This document shows positions 6,781-61,400 of a DNA stretch of 64,000 bases, piece by piece. Location of the stretch: NCBI GenBank assembly GCA_030704615.1, contig CM060734.1, forward strand, positions 45,322,001-45,386,000, in the 5' to 3' direction. A program made the position numbers and the translations under genes. Source of the DNA: Takakia lepidozioides (Eukaryota; Plantae; Bryophyta). The notes under the pieces are model-generated. The model was not told where the DNA came from. It did not search any database and saw only the letters and a program-made list of their open reading frames with translations. The number at the start of each line of letters is the position of its first letter. Within the stretch, counting starts at the first letter, position 1.

Positions 6781-9517
6781 TTATTGATGGGAGCTTAAAC
6801 TGGAGTTGGCCACTAGCTGTAGTCCAGAAGGGTCGTCTTGGCACACCCTCAGATATGGTACCACCTCTTTCACATCCTTTCTATCCAAAGAATTCTCATA
6901 TGGGCATGAGAATTGTGTGGCGGCCGCCTGGTAACACGTATCCACTGCTTGATTTCTTGAACAACTTGGTGCCCCATAGTTGTTGTTTGAATCGTAGTTG
7001 ATAATCCAAGGTTGAAGACCCCCGTAGCCTTGTGCAACGGATCCAAAAGTGGACGTAGGCGTGGTGAGCAAAGAATCTGATAGACTGAGACAAAGCATCT
7101 CGACTAATGCTCTAAGATCCACATCCGTATTACCAAATGTTTGCAGACCTTCCTGGGAAAGTTGAACTAGCTCAATCGATTTCATCGCGTTGGAGGCGGT
7201 TGGATCTCCAGCTGCAGCACTTATATTATAGTACTGATCGAGATGGTCGTGGAAGCCGCTGTAGAGAGACGTAATGAACACAACCACCTGTTTTAATAGC
7301 AACGTTGAGGCGAGTTCGTGACCAATTCTATGAAACAGATTCTGTTTTTCTAAATACAGAATGCAGAATCTCTCAACTGGTGATCGTGTCCGATTAGCAA
7401 TAATGTATGCAAGCTTCTCTACGATGGAACCCATAATCATGACAGTAAGTTACTTCACATGATCTACCACACATCCTTCGGCGTCCATCAGCAATTATTG
7501 AAAGGCGCGACGATAAATTTTGTTTTTGTTGGAAGAAATCTTGAGGTAGAATGCCGGATTAAATGTCTTACCTTCTCGCTGAACCCGGCAGAGAAATTGG
7601 ATCCGTTGTTGCTGGGAAAATCGATTGCTTGCAATGCAGGTAAGAGGTTTTGTTGAATGGCACAGCTTGTGACCCGCTCATTCACAACATCATGGAGGGA
7701 GTTGTACATATCCCGGCCATGGAGAAACCTCATCTGCACCCCTACAACCCTGTCGGCTTTCGCAAAATGTTCTTGGTGAACTCTTTTCACCATCTCCCAT
7801 GCTGGATCCACTGGAAGTATTAAATACCTGCAAATCGCTCAAAGCGAGAGATATGGGTGAAGGATCTCAATAATAAGTCGCCAAGTTTCCTGGAAAACCT
7901 CGGATAGATGAAACAATATTTGGAAGACAATTCGGTACTCAATTTTAGTATACATGTCCACACGGAACGGAGTAGTCTTTCGGGGTGAAGTGGTCTCTCT
8001 CTAGTGCACAACATCGTGCATAGCACCCATACTCCATGGTATCATAGAGGACATTGACTTCACTAAATTGTGAGAGCTGTCTGGACAAAGATTGAGATAC
8101 GAGCCATAACCTAAATTATGTGACGTCCCCGTTTCATTTTAAGAGTTTCAACATTTTCAAGATGAGCATGAAAAAGTTCTGTCAGCTGTGAATGATTCTG
8201 AAGAGACTGCGCAATTTTGATTTTGCAACAATCTGGTCTACCAATTGAGAATTTCAAACTGTAACAGATTTCTCGAGAAACGATGTACCGTGAAACAAAC
8301 ACAGAGTCTAATGTGTACATATAGGTACCCTCAAAGTTTTGTAAGAGCTTTCATTGGGTCCGGATGGTCTTGACTTACCTCAGGAGGGGCGTGAGAGGGA
8401 CTCGATCCGCAAAAAGTTCCTCCAAGGCAGGACGGAACGCAGGAATAGTAAAGAGGGAGGGGAGGAAATACAGGCAGCCCCGATCCAGATTCAGCCATTG
8501 GACCTGCTCCAAAAATCTCTGCTCCGTGTCACAGAAAAATCTTGTCACTGGGCGACATTCCCATCCATCATTCAGCCGTACTGCATGGAAACTCGGATCA
8601 GACGACGTTAAATTGTTAATCGTGAGCGGCTCAGCGTTGACAACCATTCGAAGCCTCCTTGAATCTGCTCTCTGAGTACCAACTTCCTTTGAAGATACAT
8701 TTCTCTCCATTACTGAAGCATCCCATGTTTGGAAGAAGGGAGCCGCATCCACCCATTCGTCTTTGTGGGTAGCTTGGCGAGAAGAAATGCCAGCCGACGA
8801 ATAAGGAAAATCTGAAGGAGCCTGCCATGAGGACCCTGGGAAGGGCTCACAGAGAACTTGGTGCACAGTAGATCTCGTATCAACTAAAAGTACACGCTGC
8901 GTAAGAATAGCATAAACAAAATTTGAAAGCAGCCACAGAAGCCGATTCCCTAGCCCGCCTACGAATTCGACCACGAGGAAACTGCAGCCTTCAATGGCAT
9001 CTTTAGAATGAAACAGGTCCACCAGACTTCCTGCAGTACGTTGAGTGCAGGTTCGATGTAGATTCTCATATTCCCTTAGGATAGCTGTCAGCTTTGAGGA
9101 GTAACCAGCATCTGAATGGACTTTCCCGTGCTTCCTCGCGAAGAATAATGGAAACTCGCGCCGACTGTGACAGGGATAAGTGGCCTCCCACTCAAGCCTC
9201 TCACTCTCTGACAGGTCTTTTCCAGGCACACCCCCCGCCGCCTTGACTGCTTCCTGAAGCTTTTGTAGCAGAACTTCTGCAGGGGTAGGCATTGGCGCAA
9301 GACCATATTCGACCAAAAGCCCCCATCTATTGAGATATCCAGTAGCCAGCCATTTAGGCTCTATCGAGAAAACTCTAGAGACGCAAAGTGTGCTGGCCAG
9401 ACAGATGAACGATAATGTAAGATGCACTGCGTACTTCCTAAGTATGCTCGTATAATTAATTCCGATAGTCCACTTGACTCCAGCTTTAAGTTTTAGTTTG
9501 TTGATTGCTACCACCAT
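6781..9517 (-). CDS. Xyloglucan (galactoside 2-alpha-L-) fucosyltransferase, GT37; exons 9517-8379, 7827-7572, 7341-6781 (~651 aa)
   Basis: N-terminal TM segment and motifs GGLGNRLL, LTQRVLLVD, LCEPFPGSSW, VGVQMRF, STFGSVAQGYGGLQPW. GT-AG junctions are phase-consistent (LLR/YLILP, SEK/NLF). Confidence 0.9.
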
Positions 9518-10699
9518 TGCGGCCAAGCTCTGATCTCTAAATATATTTAAGTCATAAATGTGTGCCGATTAATCTAGATCTGTACCCGATTCGTTGATGT
9601 CTTCAGAGGGAAAATTGTGCACACTAAACTTGAGGCTATTTGAATAAAAGATCGTGGGTCCCCGTCCCAGCTTTTCGATCCGTGATAGAATCTTAATTAT
9701 ATGTATCTAGCACAGTTTTCTGTGAACTCCGAACTCAGATCGGCCTGCAAGCTTTAGAGCTCCATACTCCTGCAGGAAATCCTGAATATATGCTAGACAA
9801 AACTTGAATTCTAAGGAACTTACAAGATCATCTATGAACCAATTGGTAGCTGGGCTTAGCAGAACTAGAAGCTATACTGCCCGTGAATTCCTGCATCGTC
9901 ATAGCCAATGGGTGATCAGGAACTGCACTCAAAGATAGCTCGGTTTCTGAAACGTAGATGTCCGCGATGGAGACAGAAAGTGAGCAAGGATCAGCATCAG
10001 ATGGTGCGAGGGACAACCTCAAATCATCTTATCTAATCTAAAATCTATGGGGGAAAGATATACCAAAAGATGTACCGTTGGCAGCTGGGATCCTGGATTA
10101 TGATTGTGCATCAGATCAAATGTTTGTCAAACAGCAATAACTACAGACCAGTGTGAACTGATCAAGGGCACTCTGCAAGAGGAGCACAGAGCGAGCACAG
10201 AGCTGTAGTTTTTGGAGGCAGGCATCAGAAGAAATATTATTCAGATGGCGCGACGCACCTTCGAAAGTTTCTTACGACTTCAGAACTTTGAAACACTGAT
10301 CATAGTTGGAAATGTGATCTAATCTTGAACAAGAAGCCCAACAGTAAGCTGATAGGAAGCTGATTCAGGAACGGTCAGACCCACAGCCTAGAGGAGTAGA
10401 TCTACAACGTTATACAATGCCTGTACTCTGTACACGCTACTCAGCTGGTTACCACGTTCCCTCCAGGCAACGCTAAGTCCTCTCCCTCCCTCGCATGCTG
10501 ATTCCTCAATCCACCCTCCAGCCGGGAGAGGGTCAAAGACGTGCGCAACGTATTTCCCAGCATCACGCGCCCTTGACCTTTAGAAAGTTGGTATGCATAC
10601 AAGCTACGTGTTGCAAACGCTTGCAGATTGTGGGCCCGGGCTTGTGAGTCCAAGGAAGGTGAACAGCCCATTTTCCACAATTCTGCTTTCCCCGCGTTG

Positions 10700-44409: not shown

Positions 44410-51819
<7,410 letters not shown>

Positions 51820-54156
51820 TGCCGTTCAGCTGCCTTTCCTTGAAAGATGTTGTATGCTTGCCAACCTGAGGAAAACTTATCCCTCTGCCTCTGTTCCATA
51901 GGCTCTCAGGCCCACTGTAGATTCAACAAATATACTTTCCTTTCATAAGCTCTTGAGCTTTCGGACCTTACAAAGTACCATTTCATTTCATTTCCCAATA
52001 CAGTTGGAGTGTTGATCCTAAAGTCTACAAACACAATGAGGATGCTAAGTAGTATATTAACACTTAATTTGCTCCAACCAAATTCTTTTAAGTGGCAACC
52101 CTAAGCCAACCTGATGTAGTTCCTCACTGTGGTGGTTTAGTAACCTGCAGGATGTATCCACTAAGTATAAGCTCTGCAGCTAACAATCAATGAGTACACA
52201 CACACACACACTCTCTCTCCATATCCACAGGAGGCATTTGGTCTTCATGCAACACGTCAGCCTTGAGTAGTTCTTTGGTTTCTGGGGTTCTACTGTTTGT
52301 TTATTTCTCAATCTCTCTCTCTCTCTCTCTCTCCCCCATTCCTGGGCGCTGTGCTTTGAGTTGTATGTTCTCTCTAAATAGTGGATGTTTAAATTCATCT
52401 TTCTTTCACTGAACTACCATTCTTGGGTGGAACTCTTACCTCTGACAGTACTGATCATGTGCCTCTATCATCAGGTCACGACTTCAAACTCCGGAAGAGG
52501 AGAGCAGAACTGCATCTGGATGTGTAAATTATGTTGACCCTGTACTAATGCCAGGAGTGAAACCCACCACCACACTTCCCACTTCTCTTTTGTGGGACTT
52601 TTCCATGATGGCCTGTACGTAAGTATTTGACCATCCACGGCCATGGAAATGTTTGCCATTCATTTATTTTCTTCTGATCAATTGAGATCCTACAAGAATT
52701 GGACTTGATTGTATGAGAATTAGTGGAATTCTATAGCTGAAACATTCATCTGTGCATGTGTTATACACAAGATTGCAGTATGACCAAAAGACTGTTCTGT
52801 GAGAACAATGTACATGATATGAAATCCAAGATTTATTGAAAGGAGGTACTCTTTTGAAGCATTTTTTTGGTTGACAGCTGTTCCTCCTGGACTCTGGAAT
52901 TACTTCACTGGAGTCTCTCCCTGGCAGGGAGAGATGTGCACAGGACTGATTCCCTGCCAAGCAGAACCGTCCGGAAACAAATTGCAGCCTATGGGAAATT
53001 GAAGAAATAATAAACTGTACTTGTCTTGTATACAAAATGAGAACACAGGTATCGGTGGCAGAAATGTGGATGCAAGCTACTATTAGCTTGGTTAACCCCA
53101 AGGTGTCCATTTTCCTTTCCCAGTTTGTTGGTCCTACCTATAGTCCTTCGACCTCAAATCATAGGTTGCCAAAGGGAACGTTGTTAATATTGTGGATGCA
53201 AGGTGTTAATATTATGAATGCAAGGTGGGTGCAAAGGAGCAACACCAGAACTCCCCACCACATTTTTAGAAGAACATCCCTTTTGGCAAATTAAACTGAC
53301 TGATCTATCCACCAGCTATGGCAAGACAAAGCCATCAAAAACTGATTGTAATTGAAAGAACTGGCTTCGCAGGCCAGGAAGAGAAAGCTCGGTAAGGCTA
53401 ATGTAAGATCATAGCCAATATAGTGTTCCCTGTACTTGCATGACAATGACAGCATTACAGAGAGATTATACAGCTTCAGGACATTTAAGTTAGCTAAACC
53501 CATTGTAAAAGGAGACTCCCAGTAGAAATGATCTGATCATCCCATGTGTAAGAGCAGCTTAGCTAAGTGCAATAAGAGAACGTACTTGTACTTGGCAATG
53601 TTTGGCAAAGGTAACAGGTCCTGGTCACAAGCTATGGTTGTAGTCAATAACAAGGGCCCACTGCCAGTGGGCTGCAGAGGACCATTTCCCTGTGGAATCC
53701 AAAACGCTGTTTGAGCTGCATCTTTGAGCTTTCCACTCTGCTCAATGGGCCCATTGTTTCCAGTTACTCACAACTGCAAACAAAATAGCACGGGGAAAAA
53801 CGTCTCTAGTTGGCTAAACTTTCCTCCTCTTGGCAGCAAGAGCTTCTCTGGGACGCTCTTCCTCTATATCTCGCTCTCGATTTTTGTACACCTCTGCCAA
53901 CAATGCCAACAAGTGAGAAAACTACAACAATGGCAAAAATTCAGCACAATATACTTGTCCCAGATTCCAAACCCTTAAGACTGTCGATGATAATTTGGAA
54001 GGATACAAGACAGGCAAATGGCAATGTATGCTTCTCTGGCCCTTGCAAATGCCCCTGCACTGCTATTTCGAAACAAATCTGTCTTCATTTGAGCTCAGAT
54101 CTTTTAAGCATACATTGCCATGAAATCTAAAGCTTCCATCCATTGCACTGAAGCTC

Positions 54157-55350
54157 TCAACTCTCACACTCACCTGAAGATGGTGCACAGATCTTCTTGC
54201 GTTTGAGCCGTTTTACAACCCCATCGTACAGTGCCATCACTACATCAGGACACTTTCTTGAGAAAGTGTAATAGCCATCCAGTGAGGACACATCATCTAT
54301 CTCTCTTGCAGCGTAATCAAGCACACCTTCTTTGACAACCTCAGAATTGTTTGTCCAACCGACAACATAGGTTATTAACACTTCATTTGGGGTGAGGGAT
54401 CTCAGGATCTGTTCCTCACAAATTGCTTTCAATGCTTTCACCCCATACTTGTCTGCAACTTGCAAGAGCTCAACTGAGTGGCTTTCCAATGTGGGGTCAG
54501 TCACAGAGGCTGTGTAGAAGAAGAGCACAAATGCCTCCAGAGTTGCGTAACTCATGTCCATCTTCACCATTCTTGAACCTGTTTCCTCAGTTGTATTGCT
54601 GAACATGGCCTTGAATGCTTCTGACTGGCCTACCTAGACCACCTCCAACAATCGAAGGTGTAAGAATTAAAACTAGAAGAAATGAGGATTATGATCTCCC
54701 CGTAGAATGCATTAGTGGAGAATAAATGTAGATAGTCAGTACGCAAGGACTCTTGAGTCGAATCTATAGGCTTGTACAGTGATTATATGGTGGCCCTCTT
54801 AAGATTGAATCTTTAAAGTCATGCTTGACACCAGGTTTTTGGTTTGAGGCGGAAAGCATAGAGAATGTCTATCACCTCAAAAATTGCCTGGACTCCAAGG
54901 TGACATTGAATGGCTGACCCTTAGCCTACCAGCTGGATTCACTCGGGAGTTGTACAAATGCCTGTAATGAGATCGATTGTCTAAGCCAATTACCATCCTT
55001 GACGGTTTAGAACTACTCACCAAAACAGCTTTGTGCGCATAGGCCTTCCGCCCATCCCTTGCTTGAAATACTATGTCCGTGTGTGGTGGTGGTAGCATGT
55101 GAGGGTCCTGACCACATTGTATCTCCTTGCCCTGCAGCTTCCGCTCTATATCTGTGACCAAATCCTTGGTCTTCTCTAGCTCGTCAACCAGAGCACGGTG
55201 TTTCTCATACGCATCTCTGCAATGTGCGTTTTGTTTACAAGAATCGCAACATACGATTTCTTTGTATGTAGTTGGCCCAGAACCTTCACAGACAACTTCT
55301 CGATCCTCACAAAATGTACAGATTTCCCGCCTACTTGCTTGCAGAACCAT
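54157..55350 (-). CDS. BTB/POZ domain protein with N-terminal Cys-rich/coiled-coil segment (~268 aa); exons 55350-55021, 54633-54157
   Basis: HTDIVFQARDGRKAYAHKAVL|VGQSEAFKAMF..MDMSYATLEAFVLFFYT..LLQVADKYGVKALKAICE, with a phase-0 GT-AG intron. Confidence 0.9.
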
Positions 55351-55799
55351 AGCCTGGTCAGCAGTGCCTGAGGACTAGAGGTTAAGACAATTTTCAGTAC
55401 AAGTGAGATGCAAACCCCAGCCTTTGATAAGAGCAACCTAACGACTAAACCTAAATGTTGCCTTGCTAAGTAAGAGATCTATAAACCAAAAAGATCCTTT
55501 AGCCAGGGAGACAATAACAAGGAAGGTTACTTCTGGAAGTTTGCCAGTCTTGTTTTCTGAGAGCTTCTGTTTTGGCCATTGGAGGGTATTAAACCTCTTT
55601 TGTTGGTTTGTTAACTAGGTTGGATGAGGTGGTTTAATTAGATTATAATTATAAGACGGTGGTTTAATAACTAGGTTGGTTGAGGTGGTTAGTACTAAAA
55701 GCTTGAGCTTCATGTTTTCCAAGGGCTTAGGTTGTCTTTGGAGGACTTAAGAGGTTCAAAGTATGACTTCAAAATAGGCATACTATTAGAGGAAAGGAT

Positions 55800-58478
55800 T
55801 TAAAATTCTTGTCCCTGTATTCCAAGGTCGTCTTCCTGATGTACCATTCTGCATAGTATGGTAACCTGTTTCATATGAACAAATCTACACACGATGGTTC
55901 TAGTGGTCGTTTTTGTCAAACCTTTTTCCAAACATTGAAAAACAGGTAGCTTAAGATGTTATGAAGACCGGACAAGGGACACCTCATGTAATTGTGCTAT
56001 TGTCATGACTTTGTAAGCAGACAGAGACAGCAGATACAGATATTGTAAGAACTCCTATCCTCATTAACTAGAGAATGTACCTATGAGACGTTGTTTGCCA
56101 ATGCATACTAGAGAGAACTCAAAGATGATTACCTGCAACTTTTTGTACACCTCAGTCTCCAGAGCCAGTGCTTCAGACCAAACAATTAGCCGCTGAGTAC
56201 ATTTGTCGACTTCCCCTGACACAATCCGCTGCATTGCACGTTCACGAATTCCCTCTAAGTCAGGGTCGAACCTGTGCGTGCACACAACACAAAATTGGTA
56301 TCTAAGTACAAATGGTGCAGGCATGAATGAAACGATCAAACTACACATAAACGATTAGGCACGTTAACATCCCACTAGTAGCATGGCAAAAGGACTGTCA
56401 TGTGGCATACCTTATCTGTGATGCAGCATCTCTACTGCCTGTGATGCGCTTACTAATCTTAATGGGTACCCCAGCTTGTGTGAGCCTGCATGCCAACGTC
56501 ATATTAGAGTGATAGAGCTTCCCATATTGCCATTCTGCAGTTTAAATTACTCTGAGTTGGTGTCATGATATGAAGCAATTTGACAAATACATCAGCACGG
56601 GACACAACATTACCTTGTAAGGGCAGTTGTGCGCCCAGTCTTGTTAGAGTACCTTCCTTCTAGGCCAGCATCCTTTGTCATTGTCTTCACCCACGCAGTG
56701 ATAGCTTTTAGTCCCACAGGCGATCGGGTGTACCACTGCACAATTTTACAACCACAAGTTGAACTCACACACATTGAAAAATGTTGAAGATTTGTAGAAA
56801 GGAACAGAAAAAGAAACAAAATCACCTTCCAAATTTAATAGGTATCATTTCACTTCTGGAAGAGACAAGAATATCAAAGAGCTAAAGAAGAAAATTGAAA
56901 CATGCCACATCTTTTGAGGTTGGATTCTTGGTGTCTGTGAGGAAAAATGGATGTGGAGGCAGTTCTTCATCTGCCCATTTCGCTCTGTGCTGTGCCATGA
57001 TTTTGTACGTTGAGACAACATCCGCAATGTAACATGTCACAGGGCGGCGAAGCTTCTCAGCCTGGCCATGCTGAAGGTCGGTCTTAAAATTCTTACTGCT
57101 TCTTTCATCATACCTGCTTGCAAGGTGACCAACTTCAATGGCACCATGTGAATTAACAAATAATACGGAAACAAGTCATCCTATCCTAGTAGGACCAATA
57201 TGTAATCCAACAGACTACGAAAACATTAAGGATTCCATTTCCCATACAAGAGCTCGTGTCTACAGCAGATATACAGAAAAATTGACCTAACTTCGAACTA
57301 CATACCTTAAAAATTCACCAAATTGGTCCTTCCCTAGAGTGAAATCTACATCCTTGACTTCATGCAGCTCAGCAGGACCTCGGATGAAGAAGTTTCTGGT
57401 GCAGAAATATGCAAACCGCATAGAAGCCCCCTTGCCAGAAGTAGGCTTATAATAAGATAGTGACAGCAGGGAAAGCTCATCGGAAATGGTCAAGACATCA
57501 ATTTTCTTTCGTCTCTTCCCTAATCCAAGCTTCCCAGCAGCCACCATGGATTCGTTGGCAGCTAATTGTGCCTTCCTGAATCTGGCATCTGATATGATGC
57601 TAAAGGGCGGCTCCGTAACCCCTGTTTGCACAATGTGAGCTTCTTGATGAGTGCGAATAATTCGACCAACCGTCCTGAGCAGTCTTCCAGTGCTGCGTAT
57701 CGAAACACATCCAATCAGATGGTAACACATGATCAATCGCGCACGAATTTCACAATTACATGTGCACGTACATATGATATAGCTTGAACAGTCTGGTTAC
57801 CACTACAGATAGGAATATGACGGAAAAGGGGTTTCAAAAGTTCCACATTTACGTCTCAGGCGGGTACATTGTCCCATCTTGCTTCCGAACTTCGCGAAAG
57901 AAAGTCCCGAGCAAATCAGCCAGTCCTTGCATGTCTTGCTCACTCATTTCTTCTATAGATTCATCGGTAGATATCTTGGAAAAGGACCGCCATGCATCAA
58001 ATCTGGCTCGAGCCCAGGTCTCGGAGCTCTTGTTCCATCTGCGGCTCCCTTTGGACACATTTGGAGACTCCATGTCATCAATCGGACGAACACAAAGCTC
58101 AACTCGCTCAGCCGTGCCATCCGACACAATGTCTTCGTCATCAGACTCGTCATCATCAGAGGGGGCAGCATCACCATGGCTATCACAGGGACCCATGCTG
58201 TTGGTATCAACCCCTGGTGTCATTCCAGGACCTTCATTTTCCGACTCGTCCGCCTCCGAGAAATCTTGGTGCAAGGGAGATGGCTGCGAAGCCGTAAAGA
58301 TATGCGATGGCACAGTTGGAAAAGCCGATTGATCACCAGCATTCGGTAGAGATGATTTGTTTGCAGCCAAGGTTCCACGAGAAACCAGTGACGCAGGCGA
58401 TGGTGAAAGCATTGAACTGAGGCCAAGTGAAAATGTCGTGCCACCAGGCGAGCTCAATTCCCCTACAGAATCTGCCAT
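55800..58478 (-). CDS. Crypton-type tyrosine-recombinase-derived (DUF3504, KCTD1/ZMYM/QRICH1-like) protein, ~540 aa; exons 58478-57853, 57692-57306, 57113-56906, 56735-56614, 56485-56411, 56271-56133, 55865-55800
   Basis: FFREVRKQDGTMYPPET, NFFIRGPAELH, YDERSSKN, PFFL, WYTRSPVG, YSNKTGRTTALTRL..AGVP..ITGSR..IRF. All exons splice in frame without stops. The exon-3 donor (GC or weak GT) and the last exon are less certain. Confidence 0.85.
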
Positions 58479-61400
58479 CTGACAATTGTAACAACGGATA
58501 CATAATCAATCAATCTGTAATAATTCATCTGAATCCATAATCGGAGAGGGAAGGGCCACTATCAAGGTACAAACGCCAAGGCCCCTACTGAGAAATACAT
58601 GAACAAGATGTCCAAGGAAGGAAGTTTGTGAAAGCACAAAAGCCAACAGATCTGTGATTTGGTGACAAACCAGATCTGATGTGCAGTGCTGGAGTTCAGA
58701 AGATGACCACGGAAACAGCTAGCGCAGCCTTAATTTGCGACATCGCCTCATTAAGGGAAAATGCAAGAAACCACAAACACCGCGAGATTGAAGAACCAGA
58801 AGCGCCTGCTCTTACTGCAAAACCTTTGGCAAAAACCTCTACGAAACCTCACAGAAATACTCGGAACTAATTTCTGCCATCACAACTTCGTAATCCACAC
58901 CTTCACACACAGAAACGAGTCGCACAGTGGAGACTCGACGTACTCCCAGTGCCGTTCAGGTGCGACCACGAAGCAGAACAGTGTAGGGAGACGTGTCACC
59001 GCGTCTATTCTTACCGACCATTGTTTCTGGAACTGCCTCCCTCCTGAAGGCCTTTCCATTTATTTATTTGTTTGATTTATAGAGAGGGAAAGTAGTTCTG
59101 CTTGTAATGCGGTGCTAGGAAAGCTGGTAGGGTTGGAACAGGCGTGGAGGCGGGGTTACAGTGCGGACTGAGATACGGGTGGCCCCCGCACGCAGAACGT
59201 GCAGCGCAACGTGGCCTGGCGACCGCACGTTAGGCGGAATCTGATAGCAGCAGTATTCTCTTCGTCTCGCCATGAAGATTCGCGTGACCTTGTCTCGCAA
59301 GCTGCACACACCTTGTCTGCATGGCCTCTTCCCCGTGAGATTCCAAGATCTGCTTGTTAAGGATGTTTGAGCTGTGTACACCTTCTCTCTTTGACCTCTT
59401 CGTCATGGATTTCATTTGGCTAAAGTATGGAAGTAACAGACCCGCCATGTTCCAGAACGACACAGCCGCCTCTTTGACAGGGAAGACCCTCGATCTACCA
59501 AGAATGTGCTTATGAAACTTAATGCTATTTGGCAGATTGTCCACTTCCACGAGCTTTACTATTATTCTCATCCTCTGACATTGTTGAAGGGGTGCAAGGC
59601 AACAGTTTTGAGCAAGCTATCGATCGAGGGTGCGAGAAGAATGACGGTATAGAAGGATACAAGTGCATATATGACTGGACTCGAGAATTGCAGTTGTCCA
59701 TCCGCATCAGTCACAGTGTGAACGTGAGGAGGGTCCATTAAATCTAGCGATTCCTCACCCCCTCTCTCCTACATACATCTACCCCTCTCTTCTCTCGACC
59801 GAGTTGATGAAGTTGCATCCTCCTTATGGGTAGGTTCCTGTTGTCGTTTTACTTTGTCGACAACAACCTTGTTGATATCCTCGCAATGCAAGCACCGGTG
59901 TTGTCGAAGAAGCTTAGCCACAGCCCGCATACGATTTAGAAGAGCGTCGTGTGTTTGAAAGGCTAGAGTCTGGAGTCGCTGTACAGAAAACAGGATGCCT
60001 GGAAGTTGGCACACGATGGTGTGCGCAACGGTCTCCCAACACTTCACCAGCTCGATTTTTTCCGCACCAAGATAACTGATAGCCTCTTTCAGGTGGGCCT
60101 GCTTCCAAGCCACTCCAGCCTTTCAAACATTACACACAGAACGCTCTCTTCTAGGCATGTTGTATCTGGGGTATCGCTGAGCTGCATCGACAACACCGTT
60201 GCCTACATTGCGATCTTGAGAAAGAAAGTAAGAAAAAGACATTATGTCGCAGTTCTTCGAATTCAAGCAAGGTCTCGCAACGGTACACAACAGCCCAGTG
60301 CACAAAAAGCGCGGCTTTATCGCTAATGTTATGGAAGTCGTGGTCTGGTCAAGTGTACAGGACGTTATGAGAGTTGTGATGGTGTGCACCAAGCTGACGA
60401 CTCCATACCTTTTGTGGCTGCACAGTGAGTGAGGACTGCAGAATTGAGAGCCAGACGCATCCGACCTAGATGTCATCACCGGTGTAGTTCCGGTATCAGG
60501 TTTAGCACATACCACACTGGTCCTGGTGCTACACGTATCAAAAACTTTCATACCAGTCTGCATGTATTTTTTTCCAGATACTGGTATGAGTATGAGTACC
60601 ATGACCACAATACCAGCTGGTCTGAGATATCAATTCTGGTATCCTTCCAAAGCCATCTTTGAATTACAAGTTTATCAAATAAGAGGTATCAAGTGAAAAC
60701 AAGCCGCAAGGCTCAATTTTGACAAGCTGCCACGTGGTTTATACTTAAGAGCTCTTTCATACTCTTGACAAGGTGTAAGGTCCGTTGACCGCATTTTTTC
60801 CATTGACTTCAACATGATCTGCCCTCAAGGGATAGAGCCAACAAATATAAACAAATATAGTAGGAAGTAAATTTACATAAGTACAAGTATGTAGGCATTA
60901 TACACCCACTTGGTCTCATAATTTTTGGTTCAAGTACTTTTGGTCGCTGGAAATTCACGAAAAATAGCAAAGTGGGCTTTCTTGCAACAATGATTGGCCC
61001 TTCATTTGTCTTTTGTGCACGTGAACGTAAATTGGGTTTTTTTTAAATATTGGCGTTCACAATATTGTCTGTAGTGTCAATGAGATCTCCTAAACCGTGG
61101 GTCCTTTGGCCATGATTTTTGGACCGTTGGAAAGCCCTCGATGAGTAGGGGTAACACCGACTTGGTTTCACAAAATTTGGACCTACGGTCCGGGACTTAT
61201 GGAATTATAAACAAATTATGTCGCTGAAAATTTAACTAAATTATAAAATCAAGTGTTGGAAGGACATTGGAGGTTGCACTTGGGCTAAGATAGAAGCCGC
61301 GATTTTGGTACCCCAACTTGGGCCCTCGATGAGTAGGGGTGCACGGAATTGATTTCACAAATTTGGACCTACAGTGAACAATTTTGGTCGCTGAAGATTT

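Follow-up and report, generated by a model that had tools for sequence, protein, structure and literature searches.

Animals (KCTD1b, ZMYM2-4 and QRICH1) and yeasts are known to have domesticated Crypton recombinases. In tyrosine recombinases the catalytic residues R, K, K and R grip the scissile phosphate, while a histidine acts as general acid and a tyrosine as nucleophile. SPOP and the plant BPM proteins, which combine MATH and BTB domains, are CUL3 substrate adaptors. KCTD1 isoform b consists of a DUF3504 and a BTB domain and originated from the insertion of a Crypton in front of a BTB gene (Kojima and Jurka 2011, PMC3212892); all animal DUF3504 genes lack the catalytic Tyr (PMC3212892). 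For QRICH1, PMC13538652 cites Bianchi et al. (2025) for a role as coregulator on DNA together with zinc-finger factors. The known plant domestication of a recombinase element is ALOG: the ALOG/LSH proteins are DNA-binding regulators of land plants that descend from an element with a tyrosine recombinase (Iyer and Aravind 2012, PMC3537659). Our literature search found no domesticated Crypton of land plants.

Here we describe a gene of the bryophyte Takakia lepidozioides, located in a 64,000-nucleotide stretch of contig CM060734.1, which was analysed as a whole and is referred to as the window (all coordinates are window positions). It is a single host gene on the minus strand, whose nine coding exons in our model encode a protein of 816 amino acids that contains both a recombinase and a BTB part. 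From N- to C-terminus, this protein comprises an acidic segment, a tyrosine-recombinase (YR) module of two domains, a conserved helix, a BTB-BACK region resembling that of SPOP and a basic tail. Joining the exons yields a frame that is open over all 816 residues up to the TAG at 53816-53814, with no stop or frameshift in the gene, and all introns are canonical apart from one GC-AG intron. Expression was assessed with spliced contigs from two public runs of separate studies, X1 and X2, in which seven splice joints with GT/GC..AG ends, from the 5'UTR exon to coding exon 7, were found at zero to one mismatches; as assemblies, such contigs can merge isoforms. The RNA label of both runs is a guess, yet since the contigs are spliced, their source can only be cDNA or a retrocopy. 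A contig of X2 joins 58671 to 58478 across a 192-base GT..AG intron, a joint also present in X1, so that a 5'UTR exon (58671..58834 or beyond, minus strand like all features below) precedes the ATG, which opens the second exon at 58478.

The first six coding exons encode the N-terminus and the recombinase module. Exon 1 (57853..58478), over which contigs of X1 and X2 leave no gap, starts with a low-complexity region (23 D+E vs 6 K+R in residues 61-150) whose acidic character was already noted in a previous sequence-only reading of this DNA, and continues into the beginning of the recombinase N-terminal helical domain, where a W-A-R-A-R-F-D-A-W region aligns with the N-terminal helices of relatives. 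Exon 2 (57306..57692; X1 contig) contributes the remainder of this domain, a linker and I-R-G (Arg codon 57380-57382), the first motif of the catalytic domain. Exon 3 (56906..57113) carries the Lys of S-K-N (57092-57094) and ends at a GC donor (56905-56904), the joint 56906/56735 reading 'CT..GC' in both runs; in the orthologues the corresponding donor is GT. In exon 4 (56614..56735) N-K-T-G-R (K 56640-56642, R 56631-56633) represents the family's version of HxxR, exon 5 (56411..56485) has a Ser (AGT, 56434-56436) at the T-G-H His position of relatives, and in exon 6 (56133..56271) a Phe (TTC, 56268-56270) at the position of the nucleophilic Tyr precedes the C-terminal helices of the recombinase fold; all three are present in spliced contigs. 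The codons of the retained catalytic R, K and R (I-R-G, S-K-N, K-T-G-R), as well as those of the His-to-Ser and Tyr-to-Phe replacements, are thus as previously read. The same applies to the borders of exons 1, 2, 4, 5 and 6, which match spliced contigs of the two runs exactly, while exon 3 is used in the transcript but ends 3 bases past the GT donor proposed for it, which adds one residue.

Of the seven exons originally proposed, these six are confirmed by the contigs; the last one (55865-55800) occurs in no contig and lies inside intron 6 (55375-56132). A check of the splice junctions against RNA-seq, suggested together with the seven-exon model, therefore recovers seven joints but leaves that exon unused. 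Instead, both runs join 56133 to 55374, skipping 758 bases in phase 0, and contigs that pass this joint extend below 55300. Since exon 6 splices to 55374, the transcript enters the BTB gene formerly taken as a separate neighbour. Accordingly, the frame does not end at 55800 after about 540 residues, as had been assumed, but runs on through 55374-55021, 54633-54174 and 53893-53814, and the contig joint and the orthologous loci make the BTB region the C-terminal third of the same protein. This merges two apparent genes into one in the annotation, and with the BTB domain in the same protein the functional reading changes as well.

Exon 7 (55021..55374), tied to exon 6 by the joint seen in X1 and X2, encodes a Cys-rich stretch, the conserved helix H-R-A-L-V-D-E-L-E-K-T-K and the first BTB strands; it is 50-59% identical in orthologues, with a conserved GT donor. 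A zinc finger in this exon was considered and dropped, the Cys pattern being absent from the orthologous locus L004, where the Cys-rich stretch is not conserved. Exon 8 (54174..54633) provides the rest of the BTB domain, which is thus split across exons 7 and 8, together with a BACK-like helical region and K-R-L-K-R-K, and exon 9 (53814..53893) adds a basic tail ending R-R-K-V directly before the TAG; the borders of both were set from sequence and orthologues. Pfam detects BTB (PF00651) in exon 8 with E 9.3e-12 and BACK_BPM_SPOP, also in exon 8, with E 0.0035, which is under the Pfam threshold. When a profile of the orthologues was compared with the PDB, 10 out of 10 matches were to SPOP BTB+BACK, with an alignment covering residues 227-354 (end of BTB plus BACK) at 2.7e-7 and a modest 33.8 bits. 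In the Takakia gene the BTB domain thus precedes a BACK/3-box region, and the overall order is the one known from SPOP and the plant BPM (MATH-BTB) proteins, with a recognition module N-terminal to BTB and with BACK and a basic C-terminal tail behind it; unlike in these proteins, for which the CUL3 role is established, the adaptor role is putative here and MATH, for which Pfam gives no match in any exon, is replaced by a dead recombinase module of roughly 520 amino acids.

Exons 1-6 tile the relative P0028 without large gaps, and an exhaustive protein search with exon 2 returned 90 matches, the best of which are orthologue fragments (57-71% identity). DUF3504 (PF12012) is matched by 4 of 24 relatives (best E 6e-7) and Phage_integrase by 2 of 24 in Pfam, with relative P0034 reaching 24 bits against a DUF3504 cut-off of 29.7, while an exon-by-exon Pfam scan gave no significant match to either profile for any single Takakia exon. 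A faint Pfam match to the QRICH1-domain PF25561 (E 0.29) covers residues 169-208 at the end of exon 1. The recombinase exons had no match in NCBIfam, nor did a profile of the 24 relatives among PDB sequences. At the structural level, the AlphaFold model of P0028, a relative about 35% identical to the Takakia protein and the one on which the fold evidence was obtained, has a core pLDDT of 80-97. In a fold search this model resembles Cre (E 1.9e-8 over about 360 columns) and also matches the Tn1549 integrase, XerA, IntI, XerH and the QRICH1 chain of the Zincore complex (PDB 9hjt). The model thus predicts a two-domain Cre/XerD-type fold, consisting of an N-terminal helical core-binding domain and a C-terminal catalytic domain, for the family.

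To evaluate conservation of the gene, we compared it exon by exon with loci from other species. L001/L002 and L004-L006 contain the full set of nine exons in colinear order, and the shorter loci L003 and L008 cover exons 1-3 and 1-5 only, respectively. The nine-exon arrangement including the in-frame junction is found again in no fewer than two further, deeply diverged species, a third being represented by a partial locus, and splice sites and phases are preserved. For exon 9 the colinear matches in L001 and L004 are weak, and each of them terminates in R-K-V-stop. Outside the exons, neither introns nor flanks show similarity between the window and L001/L005. The Takakia gene and fragments from other species form one clade (support 100/98). 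An annotated full-length orthologue was not found in protein searches, and a profile (A1) built from relatives and exon pieces returned two matches from a set of 5.8 billion proteins, being swamped by low-complexity words of P0020. Between Takakia and the orthologues pS amounts to 0.64-0.72 and pN to 0.13-0.27. The dN/dS ratio, proposed along with the sequence-only reading as a check of domestication, is 0.08-0.19 for the recombinase part and 0.10-0.19 for the BTB part, with synonymous sites saturated. These values indicate purifying selection on the fusion across species, with the recombinase part apparently as constrained as the BTB part, and given the saturation of synonymous sites the dead recombinase appears to have been retained for a very long time. 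The earlier argument from CpGs kept in the coding sequence is weak, as the observed/expected ratio is 0.56 in the CDS vs 0.40 in introns, at a range of 0.30-0.73 over the window.

The catalytic set reads R-K-K-R-S-F in the Takakia gene, R-K-K-R-P-D in L001 and L004, and R-K-K-R-H-Y in most long relatives. Hence the orthologues all retain R, K, K and R, while a complete set with the nucleophilic Tyr occurs neither in the Takakia gene nor in its orthologues. Conservation of the replacements themselves had been proposed as a check: both residues are lost in the orthologues too, but Pro stands there at the His site and Asp at the Tyr site. K-T-G-R, on the other hand, had been misjudged as a defect of HxxR, since most of the long relatives likewise have K in the first position (KxxR), among them those whose His and Tyr are intact. 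Judged by these residues, the Takakia protein would be a derivative of the tyrosine recombinase fold and not an active member, and its recombinase part is predicted to have no usable tyrosine nucleophile. With general-acid His and nucleophilic Tyr lost and R-K-K-R kept, holding of DNA would be possible but cutting and rejoining would not.

Two rival explanations can be weighed against these data. On the one hand, the recombinase exons could be a decaying Crypton copy upstream of an ordinary BTB gene, joined to it by functionless read-through or chimeric transcription; the contigs, not being proof of a single full-length molecule, leave some room for this. It is nevertheless largely refuted and, in our view, very improbable: nine exons, phases and junction recur in at least two diverged species whose introns and flanks are dissimilar, constraint is equally strong on the recombinase and BTB parts, the frame is undisturbed, the joint 56133/55374 was seen in two independent studies, and the 64-kb window holds no second copy of the gene. 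On the other hand, the protein might be a working recombination subunit that receives a Tyr in trans from an active Crypton in a Flp-like mixed tetramer, or supplies one itself through an isoform retaining intron 5, which would give R-Y-A-T-stop from the donor GTAT. Trans cleavage with shared active sites is known from Flp, although we know of no report of it for Cryptons. Retention of R, K, K and R in all orthologues and the existence of plant relatives with intact R-K-K-R-H-Y, e.g. in Riccia sorocarpa, would fit this idea, which we nonetheless rank lowest of all. The His is lost as well, the two dead positions drift between S and P and between F and D, as sites free of a catalytic role would, and the Tyr gained by retaining the intron is a side effect of the donor consensus and would truncate the fold; moreover, no contig of X1 or X2 retains intron 5. 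In line with the earlier proposal of a domesticated host gene from a Crypton-like tyrosine recombinase, which is upheld by expression, splicing, the orthologue clade, the kept exon structure and the low dN/dS, we consider it very likely that the locus is a domesticated fusion gene.

How such a protein might act is suggested by its architecture. A Crypton-like tyrosine recombinase would have been exapted and joined via a phase-0 splice to a SPOP/BPM-type BTB-BACK region with basic tail, the dead recombinase standing in the place of MATH as recognition module. The protein would dimerise via BTB-BACK and enter the nucleus, where the dead recombinase would bind specific sites or structures in DNA, or partners that resemble recombinases, and BTB-BACK would recruit CUL3, leading to ubiquitination of whatever occupies the bound site. 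DNA binding, dimerisation, CUL3 recruitment and nuclear location are what we infer for the protein, and this mechanism was judged most likely because the domain order is that of SPOP/BPM. The parts differ in strength: from its residues the protein is quite probably a non-cleaving nucleic-acid binder, for a function as CUL3 adaptor the chances appear about even, and the domesticated dead recombinase-BTB-BACK fusion with the mechanism as proposed is, with some reservation, the overall best explanation. The same fusion could alternatively be a DNA-bound regulator of transcription or chromatin in which BTB-BACK serves only for oligomerisation or as partner scaffold, with no ubiquitin-ligase role. 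The BTB domain of KCTD1 mediates AP-2alpha interaction and repression (PMC3212892) and BTB-zinc-finger repressors are likewise of scaffold type, Crypton-derived QRICH1 is a coregulator on DNA with zinc-finger factors and 9hjt is among the fold matches, and the BACK match stays below the Pfam threshold. As SPOP, a CUL3 adaptor, is the sole protein of solved structure related to the BTB-BACK profile, with a match spanning BACK, and the domain order copies SPOP/BPM, we regard this alternative as possible but less probable than the favoured mechanism. A more specific variant, a DNA-guided ubiquitin ligase adaptor, is unlikely at present: here the targets of the dead recombinase would be old Crypton recombination sites, branched DNA, or active recombinases of Cryptons that it could still join in mixed multimers, and CUL3, brought in by the SPOP-type BTB-BACK region, would lead to their destruction. 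The trans-acting repressor of active Cryptons suggested earlier would likewise be speculative. If true, this would amount to TE-derived immunity against its own kind, or to clearance of proteins from particular DNA structures, and would be convergent with the vertebrate DUF3504-BTB gene KCTD1b.

Compared to KCTD1b, the Takakia gene likewise combines an N-terminal Crypton-derived recombinase without Tyr and a C-terminal BTB domain, splice-joined, conserved and expressed. However, its BTB domain is SPOP/BPM-like with a BACK region, whereas that of KCTD1 is of T1/KCTD type, and five introns interrupt its recombinase part, while a single exon holds the DUF3504 of KCTD1. It also keeps the second Arg, which is lost in all animal DUF3504 genes (PMC3212892). 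Since the closest relatives come from plants (Riccia sorocarpa, Adiantum capillus-veneris) and the BTB domain belongs to another subtype, the Takakia gene is best classed by sequence as an analogue outside the KCTD1 orthogroup; the plant lineage points to an event independent of that in KCTD1, and an independent land-plant domestication is plausible. A dead recombinase has here been paired with the partner class that vertebrates chose independently, which raises the question of how hosts use catalytically dead recombinase folds, and whether their union with BTB is a recurrent solution, e.g. for CUL3 recruitment to DNA. ZMYM2/3/4, QRICH1 and WOC also contain a dead Crypton recombinase and are nuclear regulators, but they carry MYM zinc fingers, CARD or Q-rich partners instead of BTB and are not orthologous. 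ALOG retains only the N-terminal domain and stems from a retroposon, whereas the Takakia gene has both domains and belongs to the Crypton/DUF3504-like branch.

With intact Cryptons (CryptonA; Glomhoppers, PMC13465315) the Takakia gene shares the recombinase fold and a distant sequence relationship, its family having KxxR where classical Cryptons have HxxR. Unlike these elements, the Takakia locus is not mobile, lacks an intact active site, occurs at a fixed place across several species and carries a fused host domain. The intact relatives, in contrast, share the full catalytic set with intact Cryptons. The Riccia copy has no introns in the catalytic domain, one cluster of relatives is spread over 12 contigs, and the three Adiantum copies each lie on a different chromosome, which hints at a multicopy element.

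The proposed gene lies on the minus strand, and its structure was followed by aligning the contigs of two public runs (X1 and X2; two studies, same coded organism) to positions 55300-59000. Hereby, 51% and 41% of the sampled words are present in the two runs, approximately the exon share of this stretch. The RNA label of both runs is a guess; since the contigs skip canonical introns, they must derive from spliced RNA. The junction support named as a check in the sequence-only reading is present: seven spliced joints run across the gene in the two runs, all GT..AG or GC..AG on the minus strand, in contigs with 0-1 differences from the window. Coding exons 1, 2, 4, 5 and 6 are matched to the base by contigs of the two runs as they had been proposed, while exon 3 is present with a different end, placed by the contigs at 56906 with a GC donor. 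A 5'UTR exon is located at 58671-58834 (minus strand), so that the second exon opens with the ATG at 58478. The seventh exon suggested at 55865-55800 has no contig support: in both runs exon 6 (end 56133) joins 55374, and the contigs past this joint extend below 55300 by approximately 380 and 1560 further bases. Position 55374 is in frame with an ORF that opens a BTB domain, and following this frame from the joint yields exon 7 (55374-55021, minus strand). As the contig alignment covered 55300-59000, the borders of the minus-strand exons 8 (54633-54174) and 9 (53893-53814, TAG stop) were inferred from the sequence and the orthologues. The joined coding frame of 2451 bases is stop-free, encodes 816 amino acids and has canonical donors and acceptors throughout. 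Given the in-frame joint to 55374 and the BTB match of exon 8 in Pfam (9.3e-12), what had been read as a separate, adjacent BTB gene constitutes the C-terminal third of this protein. A second copy of this fusion gene was not found within the 64-kb window.

Two further transcript signals were seen. An unspliced minus-strand X1 contig of 215 bases and low depth lies inside intron 6 (55554-55768) and may represent pre-mRNA or a small transcript of its own. At 56044-56167, across the boundary of exon 6 and intron 6, the summed contig depth reaches 830 in X1 and 199 in X2 with contigs just 90-95% alike, which resembles the signal of a short repeat or conserved segment expressed from other genomic sites.

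Searched exon by exon against Pfam, the recombinase exons gave no significant match; exon 1 has just a faint QRICH1-domain match at its end. With exon 2 as the query, exhaustive HMMER searching retrieved 90 proteins; among the long relatives, which exons 1-6 tile end to end, are annotated ones from Riccia sorocarpa (a liverwort) and Adiantum capillus-veneris (a fern). DUF3504 is matched by 4 of 24 relatives (best 6e-7) and Phage_integrase by 2 of 24, all near or below the Pfam thresholds, and a profile of the relatives had no match in a PDB sequence search. In the AlphaFold model of one relative, the core is predicted with confidence (pLDDT 80-97 over residues 70-410). This model matches Cre recombinase over approximately 360 columns (E 1.9e-8) and, over a similar length, the Tn1549 integrase, XerA, IntI, XerH and the QRICH1 chain in 9hjt, a complex of Zincore with DNA. 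Together with the weak DUF3504 matches, these model-based similarities identify the family as two-domain tyrosine recombinases of a distant DUF3504/Crypton-like branch; the fold evidence for the Crypton/DUF3504-type domain proposed earlier is at the family level, from the model of a relative.

When the exon pieces of the window are aligned with 27 relatives, the catalytic positions spell, in order, R-K-K-R-H-Y in most of the relatives whose length allows a reading, and R-K-K-R-S-F in the window. Hereby, Ser at the His position (AGT, 56434-56436) and Phe at the Tyr position (TTC, 56268-56270) are encoded exactly as had been claimed. The motif KTGR, previously considered a damaged HxxR, is no damage, since R-K-K-R-H-Y in most readable relatives makes Lys at the first HxxR position a family trait. 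Type IB topoisomerases likewise have Lys at this position. The orthologues retain R, K, K and R and have Pro and Asp at the two dead positions, so that the loss of both residues is conserved and the replacements H>S and Y>F are not. Retention of intron 5 (donor 56404-56416), which occurs in no contig of the two runs, would read R-Y-A-T-stop and so place a Tyr precisely where the nucleophile used to be. In the orthologous locus L001 its retention would also give Tyr there, owing to the donor GTAT; most likely, this Tyr is a by-product of the donor consensus.

The best exon 2 matches are short ORFs of unannotated assemblies (57-71% identical). All nine exons, including the BTB exons, are found in order and on one strand in loci L001/L002, L004, L005 and L006; L003 comprises the first three exons, and the short metagenome loci L007 and L008 the first two and the first five, respectively. 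All splice sites and phases are conserved, with a GT donor of intron 3 in the orthologues versus GC in the window, the stop directly follows R-K-V in all orthologues compared, and similarity between loci is limited to the exons. The window and the orthologue fragments group as one clade (support 100/98) in the tree built from the exon-2 region, and the sister group of this clade, including the Riccia protein, has R-K-K-R-H-Y wherever readable. Nei-Gojobori counts, performed exon by exon, gave pN of 0.13-0.27 and a pS near saturation (0.64-0.72); dN/dS, a check foreseen in the sequence-only reading, is 0.08-0.19 for the recombinase exons and 0.10-0.19 for the BTB exons. Judged by orthologue residues, gene structure, tree and dN/dS, the loss of catalysis and the fusion are both older than a deep split, with similar constraint on both halves since. 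Further BTB-part fragments from other assemblies (P0106-P0109) represent additional taxa. In the Riccia relative, the boundaries corresponding to exons 2/3, 4/5 and 5/6 carry no introns; hence the fused gene probably acquired its introns after capture, or the Riccia relative lost them. This relative (CM100796.1, L009:8001-10787; KAL3694374.1), with intact R-K-K-R-H-Y and an intron-free catalytic domain, may be a mobile Crypton or another host gene; its annotated model seems mis-spliced mid-protein, as the W-Y-S-K-L-P-V-G region found by tblastn is skipped.

In the BTB part, exon 8 additionally shows a faint BACK_BPM_SPOP match, and a profile of the orthologous exon 8 pieces retrieved ten PDB sequences, all of them SPOP, with a match from mid-BTB through the BACK region (SPOP 227-354, 2.7e-7). 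The end of the protein carries K-R-L-K-R-K and R-R-K-V. As in SPOP and plant BPM proteins, a recognition module is followed by BTB, BACK and a basic tail, and the dead recombinase takes the position of MATH. The same architecture is known from animals: DUF3504 derived from Crypton recombinases, the Tyr is lost in all animal DUF3504 genes, and KCTD1 isoform b combines DUF3504 with BTB after a Crypton landed upstream of a BTB gene (Kojima and Jurka, PMC3212892). The plant gene shares this combination but is not a KCTD1 orthologue, since its nearest relatives are plant sequences, its BTB belongs to the SPOP type, it keeps the second Arg lost in animal DUF3504 genes and its recombinase part is intron-split. 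No description of a plant Crypton domestication was found in the literature searched; the known plant case, ALOG, derives from a DIRS1-like retroposon and retains the N-terminal domain only (PMC3537659).

The fusion gene is expressed and conserved; a decaying transposon with read-through transcription is an unlikely reading of the locus. Its fold family is established through the modelled relative and, by its sequence, the protein lacks the nucleophile and the His with the phosphate-binding basic residues conserved; that it is a still-active recombinase subunit is likewise improbable. Tyrosine recombinases clamp DNA with both domains (PMC3537659), and the dead module probably still does so without being able to cleave. 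In the most likely mechanism, the BTB-BACK part would dimerise and probably recruit CUL3, so that ubiquitination would be directed to DNA sites, DNA structures or recombinase-like partners. The strongest competing reading is a CUL3-independent DNA-bound regulator, the role that has been proposed for KCTD1b and that QRICH1 was shown to have in Zincore.

Several minor observations were also made along the window and in the orthologous loci. The motif D-E-S-E-N-x-G-x-G-M-T-P-G-V-D (58180-58260; exon 1, residues ~75-95), a candidate docking motif, is conserved in L001 and L004, although the acidic N-terminus around it evolves fast. In the species of L004-L008, exon 1 is directly preceded by two ORFs of 250 and 88 amino acids (L005:7717-8749; L004:1874-2906) with neither a Pfam match nor a counterpart in the window. 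The exons of a GH1 (glycoside hydrolase family 1, beta-glucosidase) gene (50100-51819, plus strand; PF00232, 1e-22) converge on the 3' end of the fusion gene, with (GA)n and (GT)n microsatellites in between (52190-52335). A xyloglucan fucosyltransferase ORF (8378-9526, minus strand; PF03254) gives a weak indication that the genome is probably that of a bryophyte: it has its best named homologues in liverworts (Riccia sorocarpa 42%, Calypogeia fissa 40%), followed by mosses.
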